Below, piece after piece: positions 45,339-64,000 of a DNA stretch of 64,000 nt (within the stretch, counting starts at the first letter, position 1; each line of letters begins with the position of its first letter). The stretch comes from Mobula hypostoma (lineage: Eukaryota). The stretch lies in the NCBI RefSeq assembly GCF_963921235.1, contig NC_086110.1, positions 13,144,001 to 13,208,000 on the forward strand, read 5' to 3'. The position numbers were made by a program, and so were the translations under genes. The notes below the pieces were generated by a model that saw only the letters and a program-made list of their open reading frames with translations, did no database searches and was not told the DNA's origin.

Positions 45339-46474
45339 TAATGGTATTGGGGGTAAGGTATTGGTGTGGGTGGAGAATTGGTTAGCAGACAGGAAACAAA
45401 GTGTGGGAATAAACGGGACCTTTTCAGAATGGCAGGCGGTGACTAGTGGGGTACCGCAACGCTGAGTGCTGGGACCCCAGTTGTTTACAATATATGTTAA
45501 TGACTTGGATGAGGGAATTAAATGCAGCATCTCCAAGTTTGCGGATGACACGAAGCTGGGTGGCAGTGTTAGCAGTGAGGAGGATGCTAAGAGGATGCAG
45601 GGTGACTTGGATAGGTTGGGTGAGTGGGCAAACTCATGGCAGATGCAATTTAATGTGGATAAATGTGAAGTTATCCACTTTGGTGGCAAAAATAGGAAAA
45701 CAGATTATTATCTGAATGGTGGCCGATTAGGAAAAGGGGAGGTGCAACGAGACCTGGGTGTCATTATACACCAGTCATTCAAAGTGGGCATGCAGGTACA
45801 GCAGGCGGTGAAAAAGGCGAATGGTATGCTGGCATTTATAGCGAGAGGATTCGAGTACAGGAGCAGGGAGGTACTACTGCAGTTGTACAAGGCCTTGGTG
45901 AGACCACACCTGGAGTATTGTGTGCAGTTTTGGTCCCCTAATCTGAGGAAAGACATCCTTGCCATAGAGGGAGTACAAAGAAGGTTCACCAGATTGATTC
46001 CTGGGATGGCAGGACTTTCATATGAAGAAAGACTGGATGAACTGGGCTTGTACTCGTTGGAATTTAGAAGATTGAGGGGGGATCTGATTGAAACGTATAA
46101 GATCCTAAAGGGATTGGACAGGCTAGATGCAGGAAGATTGTTCCCGATGTTGGGGAAGTCCAGAACGAGGGGTCACAGTTTGAGGATAGAGGGGAAGCCT
46201 TTTAGGACCGAGATTAGGAAAAACTTCTTCACACAGAGAGTGGTGAATCTGTGAAATTCTCTGCCACAGGAAACTGTTGAGGCCAGTTCATTGACTATGT
46301 TTAAGAGGGAGTTAGATATGGCCTTGTGGCTACAGGGGTCAAGGGGTATGGAGGGAAGGCTGGGGCGGGGTTCTGAGTTGGATGATCAGCCATGATCATA
46401 ATAAATGGCGGTGCAGGCTCGAAGTGCCGAATGGCCTACTCCTGCACCTATTTTCTATGTTTCTATGTTTCTAT
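45339..46474 (+). mobile_element. CR1 (elasmobranch HER1-like) LINE, 5'-truncated, nested in the L1
   Basis: ORF 45466-46254 (LGPQLFTIYVNDLD...KFADDTKLGG...RPHLEYCVQFWSP) and the 3' tail AATGGCCTACTCCTGCACCTATTTTCTATG(TTTCTATG)n. Confidence 0.93.
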
Positions 46475-49337: not shown

Positions 49338-50733
49338 TAGCTTGACATCGGTGGTTGGCATGTTGTTGGAGTCGATTGCGTAGGATGATGTTACAGAGTA
49401 CCTGGAGGCATATGACAGAATAGGCAGAACTCAGCATAGATTCCCTAAAGGAAAATCCTGCCTGACAAACCTATTGCAATTTTTTGAGGAAATCACTATT
49501 AGGCTAGACAAGGGAGATGCAGTGGATGTTGTATATTTGGATTTTCAGAAGGCCTTTGACAAGGTGCCACACATGAGGCTACTTAACAAGTTAAGAGCCC
49601 ATGGAATTACGGGAAAGTTACATACGTGGATAGAGCGTTGGCTGATTGGCAGGAAACAGAGAGTGGGAATAAAGGGATCCTATTCTGGTTGGCTACGGGT
49701 TACCAGTGGTGTTCCACAGGGGTCCATGTTGGGGCCGTTTCTTTTTACATTGTACATCAACCATTTGGGTTATGGGATAGATGGCTTTGTGGCTAAGTTT
49801 GCTGACGATACGAAGATAGGTGGAGGGGCTGGTAGTGCTAAGGATACGGAGAGTCTGCAGAGAGACTTGGATAGATTTGAAGAATGTGCAGAGAAGTGGC
49901 AAATGAAGTACAATGCTGGAAAGTGTATGGTTCTGCACTTTGGCAGAAAAAAATAAACGGGCAGACTATTACTTAAATGGGGAAAGAATTCAAAGTTAGG
50001 AGATGCACGGGACTTGGGAGTCCTGGTACAGGATACCCTTAAAGCTAACCTCCAGGTTCAGTTAGTAGTGAAGAAGGCGAATGCAATGTTGGCAGTCATT
50101 TCTAAAGGAATGGAGTATAGGAGCAGAGATGTGATGTTGAGGCTCTATAAGGCGCTGGTAAGACCTTACTTGGAGTACTGTGGGCAGTTTTGGTCTCCTT
50201 ATTTAAGAAAGGCTGTGCTAACGTTGGAGAGGGTACAGAGAAGATTCACTGGAATGATTCCGGGAATGAGAGGGTTAACATATGAGGAACGGTTGTCCGC
50301 TCTTGGACTGTATTGCTTGGAGTTTAGAAGAATGAGGGGAGACCTCATAGAAACATTTCGAATGTTGAAAGGCATGGACAGAGTGGATGTGGCTAAGTTA
50401 TTTCGCATGATGGGGGAGTCTTGTACGAGAGCGCATGACATAAGGATTGAAGGGCGCCCATTCAGAACAGAAATGCGAAGAAATTTTTCTAGTCAGAGGG
50501 TGGTGAATCTATGGAATTTCTTGCCACGGGCAGCAGTGGAGGCCAATTCATTGGGTGTATTTAAGGCAGAGATTGATAGGTATCTGAGCAGCCAGGGCAT
50601 CAAAGGTTATGGTAAGAAGGCGGGGGAGTGGGACTGAATGGGAGAATGGATCAGCTCATGATAAAATGGTGGAGCACACTCGATGGGCCGAATGACCGAC
50701 TTCTGCTCCTTTGTCTTATGGTCTTATGGTCTT
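49338..50733 (+). mobile_element. CR1 LINE of a second subfamily, 5'-truncated
   Basis: ORFs 49474-49956 (YLDFQKAFDKVPH...KFADDTKIGG) and 50014-50637; 3' tail (CTTATGGT)n. Confidence 0.92.
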
Positions 50734-51578: not shown

Positions 51579-52765
51579 AGGGCTTTTGACAAGGTCCCAC
51601 ACAGGAGATTAGTGTGCAAACTTAAAGCATACGGTATTGGGGGTAAGGTATTGGTGTGGGTGGAGAATTGGTTAGCAGACAGGAAGCAAAGAGTGGGAAT
51701 AAACGGGACCTTTTCAGAATGGCAGGTGGTGACTAGTGGGGTACCGCAAGGCTCAGTGCTGGGACCCCAGTTGTTTACAATATATATTAATGACTTGGAT
51801 GAGGGAATTAAATGCAGCATCTCCAAGTTTGCGGATGACACGAAGCTGGGTGGCAGTGTTAGCAGTGAGGAGGATGCTAAGAGGATGCAGGGTGACTTGG
51901 ATAGGTTGGGTGAGTGGGCAAACTCGTGGCAGATGCAATTTAATGTGGATAAATGTGAAGTTATCCACATTGGTGGCAAAAATAGGAAAACAGATTATTA
52001 TCTGAATGGTGGCCGATTAGGAAAAGGGGAGGTGCAACGAGACCTGGGTGTCATTATACACCAGTCATTGAAAGTGGGCATGCAGGTACAGCAGGCGGTT
52101 AAAAAGGCGAACGGTATGCTGGCATTTATAGCGAGAGGATTCGAGTACAGGAGCAGGGAGGTACTACTGCAGTTGTACAAGGCCTTGGTGAGACCACACC
52201 TGGAGTATTGTGTGCAGTTTTGGTCCCCTAATCTGAGGAAAGACATCTTTGCCATAGAGGGAGTACAAAGAAGGTTCACCAGATTGATTCCTGGGATGGC
52301 AGGTCTTTCATATGAAGAAAGACTGGATGAACTGGGCTTGTACTCGTTGGAATTTAGAAGATTGAGGGGGGATTTGATTGAAACGTATAAGATCCTAAAG
52401 GGATTGGACAGGCTAGATGCGGGAAGATTGTTCCCGATGTTGGTGAGGTCCAGAACGAGGGGTCACAGTTTGAGGATAGAGGGGAAGCCTTTTAGGACCG
52501 AGATTAGGAAAAACTTCTTCACACAGAGAGTGGTGAATCTGTGGAATTCTCTGCCGCAGCAAACTGTTGAGGCCAGTTCATTAGCTATGTTTAAAAGGAA
52601 GTTAGATATGGCCCTTGTGGCTACAGGGGTCGGGGGTATGGAGGGAAGGCTGGGGCGGGGTTCTGAGTTGGATGATCAGCCATGATCATAATAAATGGCG
52701 GTGCAGGCTCGAAGGGCCGAATGGCCTACTCCTGCACCTATTTTCTATGTTTCTATGTTTCTATG
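51579..52765 (+). mobile_element. CR1 (HER1-like) LINE, 5'-truncated, young; partial RT ORF still open (51612-52685, 357 aa)
   Basis: Uninterrupted RT C-terminal ORF and (TTTCTATG)3 tail. Near-identical to 45339-46474 and flanked on both sides by TAA repeats. Confidence 0.95.
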
Positions 52766-57969: not shown

Positions 57970-59663
57970 CTACATAATTTCAGAACAGAGAAGACAGGAG
58001 ATACAATTTAATAATGGTGACAAAGTTTCTTATGAAAAAGGCATAACATCCCCACCGCTTCGTGGAAATTCGGAAACATAACTGCTCAAACTGGCGAGGT
58101 GTTTGACATGGTAATCAGGATCTTAACTCCGTTCTTAGGAAGCACATGGAAGCTCAGCATTGTTTCATTGCCAACCAAGATGCTTTTGACTACTTAGTGT
58201 TGTCATTTTATAAATGGATAACAATTTATGCCCTGCCAGTTTAGACTCAAGTGTGCGTGCTAACCTTTTTTTTCTGTATCGGGTTAAAATGTTTGCTCGA
58301 TTGACTTTCCTGTTGTCTCCCGTTTACTTTGTGGAACTGTAGGAGATATTTGAAATAGCAGCATTTCCCCAATGGAACTGCTCGTGTTTATTAGATTTGA
58401 AATGGAGCCTCGGAACTGCAATCAATGATCTGAGGCTTCCTCGTTGCGTCCTTTATGGATTTTATCGCAGTACCTTTTGAATCTCTGTTATCATTAAACT
58501 GAATAAATTGCTGTTTGAAGTCTAAGCTCTCTCCTTATGTGATCAACATCCTATATGCAGAATCTATTTCTATCACAGACAGCATTTGCTGCTGCTTTTC
58601 AGTGAGTTCTACGTGCGAACTGGTCACAGCAGCGAGTAGGAAACCTGAGTACTATGCGGCCTACTTGTGAGAAAACAGACTGAAATCTGTCGATGGAATT
58701 AATTTATGAATGTTTCACGTTATATGCTTTTGTTTCATGAAACTTAAGCATTTAAATTACATGAAAATTGCTTGAAGTTCGACTCTCTCTTTATAAAGCT
58801 CCTTACTGGGAGCAATAAAATATTTCTTGATAATTTATTTAATCTTGTCAAACAGCATAAATATTTCATTATTAATTCGTTTTTGCATACGCGACCATAT
58901 GTCGTTTCTCTTTATCATCAATGCTTAGAATCCAAAATCATACATTGTGTAGGAGATATGTGCATTTCGACGTCCGGGGCAGTGTACTTGCTGTTCAAAC
59001 CAGGCTCGTTCATCATTTCCTTAATGTTTTGCAATCCAGACATTAAGCAGTGGTTCATTAGTCGAACCGTTATAAACAAACCCTGAAGGAAATTATCAAG
59101 AGAAGCAAATTTTTTATTTATGTAACACCGTCCCCACCCGTCGCATCTTAAAGTCTTTTGGCCGCATGAGCGCAACTACCCTATTGGTAGAAACCAATAG
59201 GGTGCTACTTGACCGAAGGTATATGATTCAAATGGAGCAAAACTGCAAAGGTAAATTGGAATGAAAAAATATTGTTACTATTTTTGTCCGCCTATCTTAT
59301 TAGACTTTTTTTTAACTCTTAAGCAGATTTCCATCGTTAACATCAAAATGTGCAGAGTACAGATTTGAATTTATATCTCAATAAAGATTTGGATAATTCC
59401 TGTATTCAGCAAGAGGGCAAGATTTCCAACATAATCACGAAAGCACTAGGTAGGCCATGTAAAAATTAGAATTGTAAGAGTTCTTATTTTCGTCCCAGCC
59501 GATACAGGGTTTAAATCTGACCTACATTATTCTGTCTTGCGGTAGCGTCATCCTGCGTCATGTTTACATAATTAATACATTTCCTCACGAAGTCCTTTTC
59601 CTTCAGCAAATTGTTTAAAATACCACATGTATTGCAAGAATTGGTCGATTTGGTTTCTGTAAA

Positions 59664-59718
59664 ATGGCGGAGAAGTTTACGGTTTCGTACATGGTACTTC
59701 TGGCTATTACTTGGCTAA
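59664..59718 (+). CDS. Leader (signal peptide) exon of an Ig-superfamily V-C1 gene
   Basis: AAAATGG start context; encodes MAEKFTVSYMVLLAITWL; phase-1 donor A|GTATGC at 59719; 203-bp intron to the V exon. Spliced leader reads ...WLIVKVTA/NEVSQFP. Confidence 0.8.
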
Positions 59719-59921
59719 GTATGCTGATTTATACACGCCGTTTCCGAATTGAATATTCTATTTAATAATATTTAACCCTGGGTGCCTGCAGCATATTCGG
59801 TTACCGTTTCTCGTCTATTCGGCCGTTTTTCGCTCTTAGATGTCCAGTGACTTACGTCATCAGTTTTTGTTAATTCACTGTGTTTAACTGTTATTAATAC
59901 TCTTGCTTACTTTTCCGGCAG

Positions 59922-60226
59922 TCGTCAAAGTAACTGCGAACGAAGTATCTCAATTCCCTCGGGACTTGGATGTCCTGGGTGGTGCGAATGTTACCATGTT
60001 CTGCAAATTTCCACTAACACAAGATACCGTTGACGTTCGTTGGTGGAGGGAAGGCGAGAAGTCATTTTAGAAAGGAACAGCAGAAGACAATTTACTGTAG
60101 AAAGGGGAAGAGGAACGCTTGTACTCTGGAATGTCAAATTCAACGACTCTGGACTGTACTACTGTGAAGTAAAGTTTCAGGAGCAATCTTTCGGGAGAAG
60201 CTGTAGCACCAAGCTCACTGTGTTCG
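59922..60226 (+). CDS. Ig V-set exon with joined J-like G strand; frameshifted as given (T4 at 60065-60068, TAG at 60068-60070)
   Basis: Acceptor TTTTCCGGCAG| and donor G|GTAAGT (phase 1). The 5' frame gives VSQFP...VTMFC...VRWWR; the 3' frame gives LVLWNVKFNDSGLYYC...STKLTVF. Adding one T joins them into a complete V domain. Confidence 0.88.
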
Positions 60227-60959
60227 GTAAGTGTGGCTGTTTGGAGATTTTCGGCTCTGTGCATTTTACATCAAACTTAGTGATGAGGACAAAACAAAAT
60301 GTTTCTACTTGATAATACAAACGGCGAAAATGCATTTGTTTCCCGCGTTAAAATATACCCCAGTCCAGGGATTCTAAATTCAGAATTGCAAAGAACAGAA
60401 AAACTTCATGTAGCAACTATTAGGCGCATACTGGAGTTCATTCTGTTTATCGTATCGTACTTCCTCGGCTCTTTCTTACTGCTGTTTGTCCAGCCTGGTT
60501 CATCAGCTATCTCCCAGTTAAACCTAATGATTAAGGTCAGTGATACCTTAGGACTTTACCGTCATTATCGCGAAGGTACTGTGAATACAACCAATGACTT
60601 TTCAAGCAAGGTTAGGATTGTTTTGCAAGCAAGGGGCTGAACTAATATCAATATTAATATGAATGGCTGGCGTTGGATAACTCGATTCCGCATCACAGAG
60701 GACGCAAAATATTAATACTTAAATAGAGTAATCTCTATCAAAGGATCTGCCTGTAGCAGCACAATGCTCCATTTCCCCATCAACAAGTAGACAGGAATAA
60801 TACCCAGCTCCAAATGAGTTAATTCCAACATCAAGTAACAATTTATCGCCTGCACTGCAAATTGTCATCCCAACTTTTTTCATGCAGGATTAGCAAAATC
60901 TAAACTTCTTTCACCATACAAAATGGGGAGTAATAGAGACCTCTCGAGTTCGAGGTGAA

Positions 60960-62110
60960 TATTGCTGGGTTAGATCGTAAAGGGTTGAAAGTCCAGCGCA
61001 AACCCACATTCAACATGTCCGCTGGCAGCTCATTCCACAATAGCAATACCGTCTGAGTGAAAACGTTTCCGCTGATGTTCGCCTTTAATACTTCTCATTT
61101 TACGCTTAAGCTATGACTTCTAATTACATTCTCACCCAACCTCAGTGGATGAAGCAGGCTTACATGCATCAGATCTACATCCCTCATAATTTTGTATACC
61201 TCTATTAAATGTTTGCTTGTTCTGTTACGAATCGTGGGCAAAAATCCTAACCTGTTAAACCTTTGCTCGTCATTGATGTCCTCAAATTCATGCCACATCT
61301 GTGTAAGTTTTCTTTGTATTTATTCAATCGTATTTAAACTTTACTGAAGATAGGTAACCAGAATTGCGAACAATACTCCAGATTTGTTCTGAATAACGTC
61401 TAATACAACTTCAGCATGGCATCCCAACTTCTACACTCAATACTCTCATATATGGAGGCCGATATGACAAAGGTTATCTTTATGATACCATCCGCCTTTG
61501 ACTCCATTTTCAATGAATTATCAATCTATATTCCAAGATAACTTTTTACCACACTTCCTAATGCGAGTCTCGTACATCCCAGATTGGTTTGTCTTCCCAA
61601 AGTAACAGCATACAATTACCTTCATTAAATTATATCTGCCATTTTCAGTCCACCTGGTCTATAACCTGCTGCAAGCTTTGATAGGCATGCGGCCCAGCAC
61701 TAGTCAAAGGCCTTCGTTCAAAGAACAACCATCTACTACCATACTCTGGCTGCTCCCGCGAAGCCTACGTTAGACACAACTTACTCTTTCATCCTGAATG
61801 CGAAGCGAACGTACTTGATTAGCCACCCCACCCCCATGCAGAACTTTTCTAAAGTAATTGCTAAAATCCATGTTGACTATATCCACTGTTATCCTTCATC
61901 AAGATCAATGGTAACCGGCTCGAAGAGCTCATTAAGATTGGTTTTACACAGTCTGCCTTGCAAAAAACATGTTGTGTAATCAAAATCAAGCCCAGTCTAT
62001 TTATTTCTCCTATTGTTTAGAATATCTTCTAATACATTACCCAGTTATCTGTAATACCAACTAGTCCATAATATCTCGGCTTATTCCGAGAGTCCATCTT
62101 GAACAACGGC
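60960..62110 (-). mobile_element. Old CR1 fragment in the V-C1 intron (antisense)
   Basis: Reverse complement shows CR1 3' RT features (e.g. LIEVYKIMR...LGENVIRSHSL). Confidence 0.7.
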
Positions 62111-62229
62111 AAACTAGATACAAAATTGGAGCAACACACATAAAAATTGCTGGTGAACGCAGCAGGCCAGGCAGCATCAACAGGAAGAGGTACGGTCAGC
62201 GTTTCCGGCCGAGACCAATTGGAAAGCAA

Positions 62230-63290
62230 GTTCATGGGAAACTGAAAGATCTGAGGGTAAGTAATTCACCTGGATCAGATGATGAACATCCCAGGATTCT
62301 GAAAAATGTTGCTCATAAGATTGTGGATGTTTTAATAAGGTCTTTCAATAATAACTAAATTCTTGAGTGGTTTCGATAGACAAGAAAATTGTAAATGTCA
62401 CTCCACTCTTCAAGAAGCCTGAAGGCGGAAAAGGGAAACTGTAGGCCAGTCAGTCTGACCTCACTGGTTGACAAGATGTTGGAGTCCATCATTAAGGATC
62501 AGGTCTTAGGTTAGCTGGAGACACATAATAAAACACGCACTATTCAGCATAATTTCCTGAAAGGAAACTCTCGCCAGACAAATCTGATTGAATTATTTGA
62601 AGGAATAAAAAGTAGGATAGATAACGATAGGCAGAATCGGTTGTTGTGCACTTGGATTTTCAGAAGGCCTTTGACAAGGTACCACACACAATGCTGTTAA
62701 ACAAGCTACGAGCCCAAAGTATTACAAGAAAGATATAGGGTGGATAAAGCAGTGGCTGGTTGGTAAGTGACAAAGAATGGGAATAAAGTGAGCATTTTCT
62801 GGTTGGCTGCCCGTGACTAACGGAGTTCCACAGGGATCTGCGCCGTGACCGATTCGTTCAATGTTATCTGTCAATGATATGGATGGTGGAATTGATGGCT
62901 TTGTTGCAAAGTTTGCAGACGATATGAAGAGAGGTGGAGAGGCAGGTAGTTTTAGGAAATAGAGAGGCTACAGAAGGACTGAGACAGATTAGGAGGGCAG
63001 GCAAAGAAACGGCAGATGGAATGCAGTGTCGAGAAGTGTGTGAGCATGCAGTTTGGTGGAGGGTGTGAACGGTTTGTATATTTTCTAACTGGAGAGAAAA
63101 CACAAAAAGAAACATTCAGGTGGAAAGGGACTTGGGAGTCCGTGTGCTGTATTCCATACAGGTTAATTTGCAGGTTGGGTCTGTGGTCAGGAAGGCAAAT
63201 CCAATGATCGCATTCATTGCAAAAGGACTAGAATATAAGGGCAAGGATGTAATGTTCAGACTTCATAAAGCACTGGTGAGGCGTGAGGTG
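62230..63290 (+). mobile_element. Old CR1 fragment in the V-C1 intron (sense)
   Basis: DNA for RPVSLTSLV, LDFQKAFDKVPH, KFADD and VRKANPMIAFIAKGLEYK, with many lesions. Confidence 0.75.
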
Positions 63291-63527
63291 TCACGGCGTA
63301 TTTCGCATCTTGGCCCCCGAAGAACAATGTTTCTATTCGAAGTGTGTGTGTATGGTTGAGCAACAATAAACAGAACATGAAACTGAAAGGATTTATTAAA
63401 TACTGGTTAATACTGGCGGGTAACTAATTTGATAGTTGAACGTCATGCTAGTTGGAGGGGAGATAAGGGAAGTTACCTGTACTGATATGGATTGAAAATA
63501 CTCAATATAACTATGATTTTACTCAAG

Positions 63528-63821
63528 CTCCTCCAACTCCATTGGAAATTGTTCCTGTTGGAGGGTTTTCGTTTCCTCGAAAGCTCCTTTGTAAAACGGC
63601 TGCCTTCTACCCGGAGGAACTAGAAATCGTTTGGCAAAGAAATAACAAGCAAATTCGCACTGGAATAGAGAGTGTGAAAAACCGAAGCGTGGATGGCTTG
63701 TTCGAAGCTTTTCGTTTATTGGAATTCACGCAGTCTACTTGGGAAAAAGATGTTTACACCTGCCTGGTGTCGCATGGCTCCCTCACGGTGCCTGCCAGTT
63801 TCCGCTTCGTCCAGGACCAAG
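63528..63821 (+). CDS. Ig C1-set exon (intact) of the V-C1 gene; downstream exons lie outside the window
   Basis: Acceptor TTTTACTCAAG| and donor CAAG|GTAAGA; 294 bp, phase 1-1. Encodes APPTPLEI...LLCKTAAFYPEELEIVW...SVDGLF...W...YTCLVSHGSL, the C1-set signature (C-x4-FYP, W, YxCxVxH). Confidence 0.92.
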
Positions 63822-64000
63822 GTAAGATAGTGTCTTGATGAAGTCATGATGTTGGATCTCGGCCTTAAACGTCGACATTTTAGATCTGCCTGATCGGCTG
63901 AATTCCTCCATTTTATGTGTTATTCTGAATTTCAGCATGTCCAGAATCTTCTGTGCTCAATGTAAATGGAAGTCTTTACAAGTCATAGTTTGTGGGTTAA

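Follow-up and report, generated by a model that had tools for sequence, protein, structure and literature searches.

What kind of receptor does a gene encode when its variable (V) domain is already joined to a J-like strand and is followed by a true C1-set domain? Non-rearranging V(J)-C1 genes serve in reasoning about antigen receptors as they were before the RAG transposon split the V exon, and C1 domains are rare outside immunoglobulins (Ig), T cell receptors (TCR), and the major histocompatibility complex (MHC). Such a gene lies on the forward strand at the 3' end of a 64,000-nucleotide stretch of the Mobula hypostoma genome (NCBI RefSeq assembly GCF_963921235.1, contig NC_086110.1, positions 13,144,001 to 13,208,000), here called the window, in whose coordinates all positions are given. 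Our analysis indicated that the locus is probably the 5' half of a member of a chondrichthyan family of type I membrane receptors, orthologous to the intact Mobula birostris protein XP_072135415.1 (here P0154), and that it most likely is a recently inactivated copy or a null allele.

The gene comprises a split leader, one V exon, and one C1-set exon (Table 1). All of its splice sites are GT/AG, and frame translation of positions 59000 to 64000 placed all three junctions in phase 1. The C1 exon matched the Pfam C1-set with 49 bits (E 7e-13), and the C-terminal half of the V exon matched the Pfam V-set with 29 bits. Recombination signal sequences (RSS) consisting of heptamer, 12- or 23-bp spacer, and nonamer were absent from both strands between 59600 and 64000, where shuffled sequences predicted 0.36 by chance. 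The RSS found 3' of a rearranging V gene is missing here, and the V exon instead continues through the J-like strand. A bona fide C1-set exon, introns exclusively in phase 1, and the lack of a properly spaced RSS had all been noted in a preliminary description of the locus and were confirmed. Its further claim, that a single exon encodes the V domain through the G strand, stood insofar as one exon does end in TKLTVF, but this exon is not one open frame. The J strand which it had recognized is present as TKLTV, but in degenerate form: most family members have G-x-G-(T/S)-x-L-x-V, the antigen-receptor J motif, whereas the G strand of both the window gene and P0154 (FGRSCSTKLTVF in the latter) reads S-C-S-T-K-L-T-V, with both glycines replaced and a cysteine gained. 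We read this degenerate motif as a derived state of the sub-branch and not as a ground for removing the gene from the family.

TABLE 1 Features of the receptor gene at the 3' end of the window
Feature	Positions	Strand	Description
Leader exon	59664..59718	+	ATG at 59664; 18 codons plus 1 base; MAEKFTVSYMVLLAITWL; donor GT at 59719; phase 1
Intron 1	59719..59921	+	203 bp; GT..AG; phase 1
V(J-like) exon	59922..60226	+	305 bp, with loss of 1 base; acceptor AG at 59920-59921; donor GT at 60227-60228; 3' end ...TKLTVF
Defect site in V exon	60062..60070	+	TCA TTT TAG; the orthologue P0154 has A-F-L there
Intron 2	60227..63527	+	3301 bp; GT..AG; phase 1; repeat debris including reverse-transcriptase fragments at ~62100-63300
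C1-set exon	63528..63821	+	294 bp; intact; phase 1 on both sides; acceptor AG at 63526-63527; donor GT at 63822-63823
Intron 3, start only	63822..64000	+	Donor GTAAGA; transmembrane and cytoplasmic exons lie past the window end

At 305 bp, the V exon is not a multiple of three and therefore cannot connect two phase-1 junctions in frame; accordingly, no open reading frame (ORF) runs through all exons. Strands A to C are read in frame 59924+3n (IVKVTANEVSQFPRDLDVLGGANVTMFCKFPLTQDTVDVRWWREGEKSF), which ends in ...VRWWREGEKSF* with a TAG at 60068 to 60070, and strands C' to G follow one frame over, at 59923+3n (...LERNSRRQFTVERGRGTLVLWNVKFNDSGLYYCEVKFQEQSFGRSCSTKLTVF). The T-run at 60065 to 60068 contains four T's, while the A-F-L-E-R of P0154 needs five. 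P0154 is open across this run (GEKAFLER), and the window copy has S for A at the preceding codon. With one T missing, a translated product would break off after the C strand, at 67 residues from the start codon. Because of this frameshift and the premature stop in the V exon, the window copy is probably not functional; most likely, it is a recently inactivated pseudogene or a null allele.

A HMMER search of 1.84 billion representatives, for which the C1 exon served as query, returned two kinds of protein: long ones with multiple C1 domains and proteins of 200 to 490 amino acids (aa) that matched once, at about residues 120 to 220. The closest was P0002 of M. hypostoma itself (82% identical in C1), and a word-based search seeded with P0002 found P0154, an intact protein of 300 aa which bears the automatic name NCR3LG1-like. 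P0154 and the window gene were identical at 209 of 217 aligned residues (96%), with 94% in the N-terminal half of V, 98% in its C-terminal half, and 97% in C1 (P0154 residues 121 to 218); in the leader, 1 of 18 residues differed. A maximum-likelihood tree was built from 39 family ectodomains, with a coelacanth SIRP-beta-like protein as the root; in it, the two were sisters (Shimodaira-Hasegawa-like approximate likelihood ratio test [SH-aLRT], 99) and fell in a six-member Mobula clade (96), which was itself nested in a clade of 17 stingray and devil-ray models (100). By sequence identity and tree position, the window gene is thus the orthologue of XP_072135415.1. Its longer branch (0.027, versus 0.005 for the orthologue) was rejected as a sign of decay, as the same asymmetry was seen in other M. 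hypostoma/M. birostris pairs. Past C1, P0154 continues for 82 further residues through GADTK, a membrane span containing a lysine (ILSYTLKGAAIL), and a tail with the motif TAYNSL.

Could the gene be functional all the same, with the missing T being a homopolymer slip of assembly or base calling, or belonging to a rare null haplotype beside an intact one? Only one base of a T-run is affected, and the splice sites, the C1 exon, and the high identity to an intact orthologue are all retained. We examined this by means of Logan contigs of four runs, aligned to 59600 to 63999 at a likeness of at least 85%. In X1, a DNA run of the same species, contigs with a G at 60062 and one extra T accounted for 9.8x of a total depth of 23.8x, and the remaining ~14x had the window form. 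X1 contigs perfectly matching the window intron had depths of 12.5 to 15.6x, equal to the value for the short T-run form, which was hence present at single-copy depth. The extra-T contigs, which occurred in all four runs, would restore the frame and in X1 speak for an intact copy, but they also carry the paralogue-type G at 60062. Moreover, a 6-base deletion at 63812 to 63818 in the contigs matched a paralogue (P0151) in which the end of C1 is shorter by two residues. Since paralogues were thus mixed in, the extra-T contig may derive from a paralogue and not from an intact allele. X1 contigs also differed uniformly from the window at 59695, 62427, 62841, and 63829, and therefore probably do not just represent the assembly's own consensus. 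Finally, none of the M. hypostoma family models returned by our searches matched the window gene, as would fit a copy annotated as a pseudogene. Taken together, we regard a functional gene as rather unlikely. This species probably does have the short T-run, and the contig data are compatible with both a fixed and a polymorphic state. As for the four uniform differences themselves, they may reflect individual variation or small assembly errors; the one at 59695 (T>C) would turn leader residue V11 into A.

Several points nevertheless weigh against recent inactivation. Differences from the intact orthologue amount to only 8 of 217 residues, and no strong decay signal is seen besides the frameshift. 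X1 may be the source data of the assembly, in which case its support for the short T-run is not independent. The frame-restoring T seen in contigs of the same species may mark an intact allele and not a paralogue; the aligned contigs evidently do include paralogues. With respect to transcripts, no run recorded as RNA contained the locus, and the possible same-species RNA runs X15 to X17 gave next to no coverage of the gene. In X21, which is probably an RNA run of a related species, some contigs stopped exactly at 59922, 63527/63528, and 63821/63822 with extra, unplaced letters, which indicates that these borders are used in splicing. The border-ending contigs were 8 to 9% different from the window and are thus attributable to paralogue transcripts and not to this gene; other X21 contigs extended into the introns. 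The junction of V to C1 was not among the joints listed, which were dominated by repeats.

To which family does this gene belong? A profile search of a 5.8-billion-protein set gave about 75 members at 115 to 310 bits, and the next protein, teleost JAM2, reached at most 72 bits. Among the top hits collected, members scored 88 to 148 bits with the V profile (64 to 68 bits for two short fragments) and 110 to 147 bits with the C1 profile, compared to at most 26 and 55 bits, respectively, for all others. A search restricted to the C1 region returned family members only. On these scores, the family is sharply bounded. The window gene has its hallmarks in both domains: the V pieces show the profile VxQxP...C.FP..QD..DV.WW+.GE..FLE.DSR...DSGxYYC, and its single C1 domain starts with PPTPL and contains CKTAAFYPE...YTCLVSH. 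All members with a source name were chondrichthyan, with representatives in Mobula, Hypanus, Hemitrygon, Pristis, Narcine, Leucoraja, Scyliorhinus, Mustelus, Stegostoma, Chiloscyllium, Heterodontus, Heptranchias, and Callorhinchus. Within a species, they almost always resided on one chromosome, as exemplified by eight models on the 80.6-Mb chromosome of M. hypostoma and seven on the 86.2-Mb chromosome of M. birostris. Their automatic names contradict each other and include SIRP-alpha-like, SIRP-beta-like, NCR3LG1-like, TCR-beta-like, lambda light chain-like, PD-L1-like, CD276 homologue, MHC class II-like, and tapasin-related-like. A full-text search of the searchable library found no paper describing the family; several key shark papers lie outside this library, so that "undescribed" is provisional. 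A paper on the CD28 family deals with single-V receptors only (PMC11599192).

Some models deviated from the common layout. P0037 had two near-identical C1 domains, and P0004 of Callorhinchus milii, with the order C1-V-C1, looked like a predictor's fusion of neighboring genes. In P0166, which is located on a 33.7-kb scaffold of M. birostris and is the copy orthologous to M. hypostoma P0151, the membrane span followed the V domain directly, the C1 exon being absent; exon skipping, exon loss, or an assembly gap are possible causes.

In the family alignment, the Cys-Trp-Cys core was invariant, its cysteines enclosed only 53 residues, and the DSGxYYC motif was present. In an AlphaFold model of the P0154 ectodomain (predicted local distance difference test [pLDDT], 88), no C'' strand was present. 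The V domain is therefore of a short V/I type with a J-like G strand and is not a full-length antigen-receptor V. When single domains were superposed on solved structures, V fitted CD79b and the V domain of skate IgNAR, and C1 fitted best on the membrane-proximal domains of MHC class II (root mean square deviation [rmsd], 1.4 to 1.5 Å). VNAR is a V domain known to lack the C'' strand.

Beyond the ectodomain, two kinds of members were distinguished. Long-tailed members carried an immunoreceptor tyrosine-based inhibitory motif (ITIM; LTYAAL and variants) together with motifs resembling the immunoreceptor tyrosine-based switch motif (ITSM; TxYAxL, TLYADV), whereas short-tailed members (P0158, P0162, P0167, P0173, P0056, and P0124) had an arginine near the outer end of the membrane span. 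The overall layout is that of a split leader, a short V/I-type domain whose J-like G strand is encoded with no rearrangement, a single C1-set domain, a membrane span, and a signaling tail. In such receptors, the ITIM and ITSM-like motif of the long tails would recruit SH2 phosphatases, and the membrane arginine of the short-tailed forms would pair with an adaptor containing an immunoreceptor tyrosine-based activation motif (ITAM). From these motifs, we infer what looks like a paired inhibitory/activating receptor system; a point against this reading is that the signaling roles of the tails are deduced from motif patterns only. ITIM tails beside short tails with a charged membrane residue are a signature common to SIRP, KIR, LILR, and NITR. 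The Hypanus sabinus relative P0178 has an aspartate at the position where P0154 (residues ~225 to 245) has its lysine, and in other members the site is occupied by Gly-Gly. It is unusual for receptors that keep tyrosine motifs to have opposite charges at a single membrane site. Both the P0154 and the P0178 models end before the last tail exons.

We compared the family with known systems by structure searches with Foldseek and VIA-align, and domain profiles were also run against solved structures. Both structure searches ended in a tie of B7-H6, B7-H3, PD-L1/L2, butyrophilins, Neph1, light chains, TAPBPR, SIRP, and UrIg2, at 14 to 24% identity. The V profile matched generic I-set and V-set domains, TCR-alpha, light chains, and an amphioxus VJ-C2 protein.

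By function, as far as tail and membrane motifs suggest it, the family most resembles SIRP. Both are multigene clusters of type I membrane proteins in which a non-rearranging V domain with a J-like G strand sits on a C1-set domain, and both appear to combine inhibitory ITIM/ITSM members with short-tailed members bearing a basic membrane residue. In addition, many RefSeq names read SIRP-alpha-like or SIRP-beta-like, and the coelacanth SIRP-beta-like model was the best non-family protein on both domain profiles. This likeness raises the question of whether the family is the cartilaginous-fish counterpart (co-orthologue) of the tetrapod SIRP receptors. However, the coelacanth match is weak (26 bits for V and 53 bits for C1), and SIRPs have a full-length V followed by two C1-set domains, whereas P0154 and nearly all other models go from one C1 to the membrane span, and the family has a short V and is confined to cartilaginous fish. 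In structure alignments, SIRP reached 14 to 19% identity, and its score (Z, 13.9) was tied with those of B7-H6, butyrophilins, PD-L2, light chains, and TAPBPR (14 to 24%). We therefore consider co-orthology with SIRP improbable, and a separate chondrichthyan family remains the preferred reading.

Membership of the NKp30 (NCR3) or B7-H6 (NCR3LG1) family had been suggested by the automatic name of the orthologue, and B7-H6 was the top match in VIA-align (Z, 16.7). B7 proteins and butyrophilins (B7-H6, B7-H3, PD-L1/L2, and BTN) indeed gave the best whole-ectodomain matches, with Z of 15 to 16.7 and TM-scores of up to 0.75, and share phase-1 V and C exons, but identity was only ~20%, and the Z of B7-H6 lay within 1 unit of those of Neph1, Rst, PD-L2, and butyrophilin (17 to 22% identity). 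To our knowledge, the V domains of B7 proteins are devoid of the GxGTxLxV J-like motif, and B7 proteins are ligands without ITIM/ITSM pairs. NKp30 consists of a single VJ-type domain, a stalk, and a membrane span with an arginine, and is not known to have a C1 domain; in the window gene, by contrast, a C1-set exon follows the V exon. The NKp30 domain is also of the non-rearranging VJ type, and sharks have a multigene NCR3 family (as cited in PMC12227049). On balance, we judge placement in either of these two families to be very improbable.

Teleost NITRs are another comparable group of receptors: they have a non-rearranging V domain with a J-like motif, occur in ITIM forms and in activating forms with a charged membrane residue, and make up large clusters. 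Their second domain is of the I type, not C1, and NITRs are known from bony fish only.

UrIg and UrIg2 of elasmobranchs are non-rearranging as well and have a typical full VJ domain with three to eleven C domains; UrIg is expressed mainly in liver, and UrIg2, which has a transmembrane/cytoplasmic domain, mainly in gill and liver (PMC12227049). They share with the ray family a split leader, a single-exon VJ-type domain followed by C1-type exons, and the restriction to cartilaginous fish, but differ from its single C1 domain with membrane span and ITIM tails. UrIg2 (9dmx) topped the PDB list for the window C1 exon on summed score because three domain scores add up; these amounted to about 22 to 24 bits per domain, no better than those of IgE and IgM, and the structural match had a Z of 13.7 and an rmsd of 11. 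The idea that the locus is part of a germline-joined Ig light-chain cluster, or is itself a UrIg or UrIg2 gene, can be dismissed almost entirely: although light chains led the Foldseek PDB list and the human lambda constant domain was the best single solved match of the family C1 profile (46 bits), the gene is not a light chain because its C1 exon ends in a phase-1 GT donor, where in a light chain, a secreted protein with a C-terminal Cys, coding would finish with the C exon and its stop codon, and because the orthologue goes on to a membrane span and tail; its V is, moreover, short and without a WYQQKPG-type framework 2, and P0154 has one C1 domain where UrIg/UrIg2 combine a typical VJ with three or more (PMC12227049).

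In agreement with the preliminary description, the window thus contains a leader-V(J-like)-C1 gene that does not rearrange and belongs to a receptor family specific to the cartilaginous-fish lineage, and no known Ig, TCR, or MHC gene; by family profile scores, neither domain grouped with a germline-joined light chain or a characterized orthologue. Two qualifications apply. The gene is already on record in kind: the intact orthologue and dozens of paralogues exist as RefSeq models under wrong names; what the locus adds is a copy that was probably broken recently. Nothing found here singles out this gene as a relative of the pre-RAG ancestor, and its relatives' tails point instead to a SIRP-like paired innate receptor.

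The rest of the window is dominated by repeats and, upstream of the receptor gene, showed no further cellular gene. Retroelement debris covered most of its length, for instance at 1 to 2100 on the reverse strand and at 45466 to 46251, 49384 to 50634, and 51579 to 52682 on the forward strand, and included gag-pol/integrase of a long terminal repeat (LTR) element (Integrase_H2C2, 67 bits) and several ORFs for reverse transcriptases of long interspersed nuclear elements (LINEs; RVT_1, 71 bits). A weak C1-like tblastn match at 51603 to 51776 was rejected, as it lies inside a reverse-transcriptase ORF. Between 7670 and 17339, a tandem array of 9.7 kb consists of ~303 copies of a 32-bp unit (93% matches; consensus, CCCAGCCTGCCTCCAGGCTCAAGCCTCGAGAC) and creates very long artifactual ORFs in several frames. 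Within intron 2 of the receptor gene, an RVT_1 match was located at 62646 to 62738, and the stretch from 62099 to 63274 had a summed contig depth of 10^4 to 1.8x10^6 in each of the four runs, the probable RNA run among them, and represents one of the most abundant repeats of Mobula genomes.

With regard to the family as a whole, one possible reading, which we put forward tentatively, is that of an undescribed paired inhibitory/activating cluster that extends over chimaera, sharks, and rays, combines a ready-joined VJ-like domain with a true C1 domain, and is separate from SIRP, NKp30, B7, and UrIg. If this is true, the family would represent a further surviving relative of the type of gene that gave rise to the rearranging antigen receptors. 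The sub-branch of the window gene would then display two oddities: a J motif that has lost both bulge glycines and gained a new cysteine, and a charged membrane residue, lysine in Mobula and aspartate in Hypanus at the same position, in receptors with tail tyrosine motifs. Devil rays carry a cluster of V(J)-C1 genes that evolves by duplication and loss, like the paired receptors of the natural-killer type in mammals. RefSeq labels this family with half a dozen contradictory names, and the family as a whole deserves curation. The value of the locus lies in the family rather than in the window copy, which serves as a useful marker of recent gene death within it.

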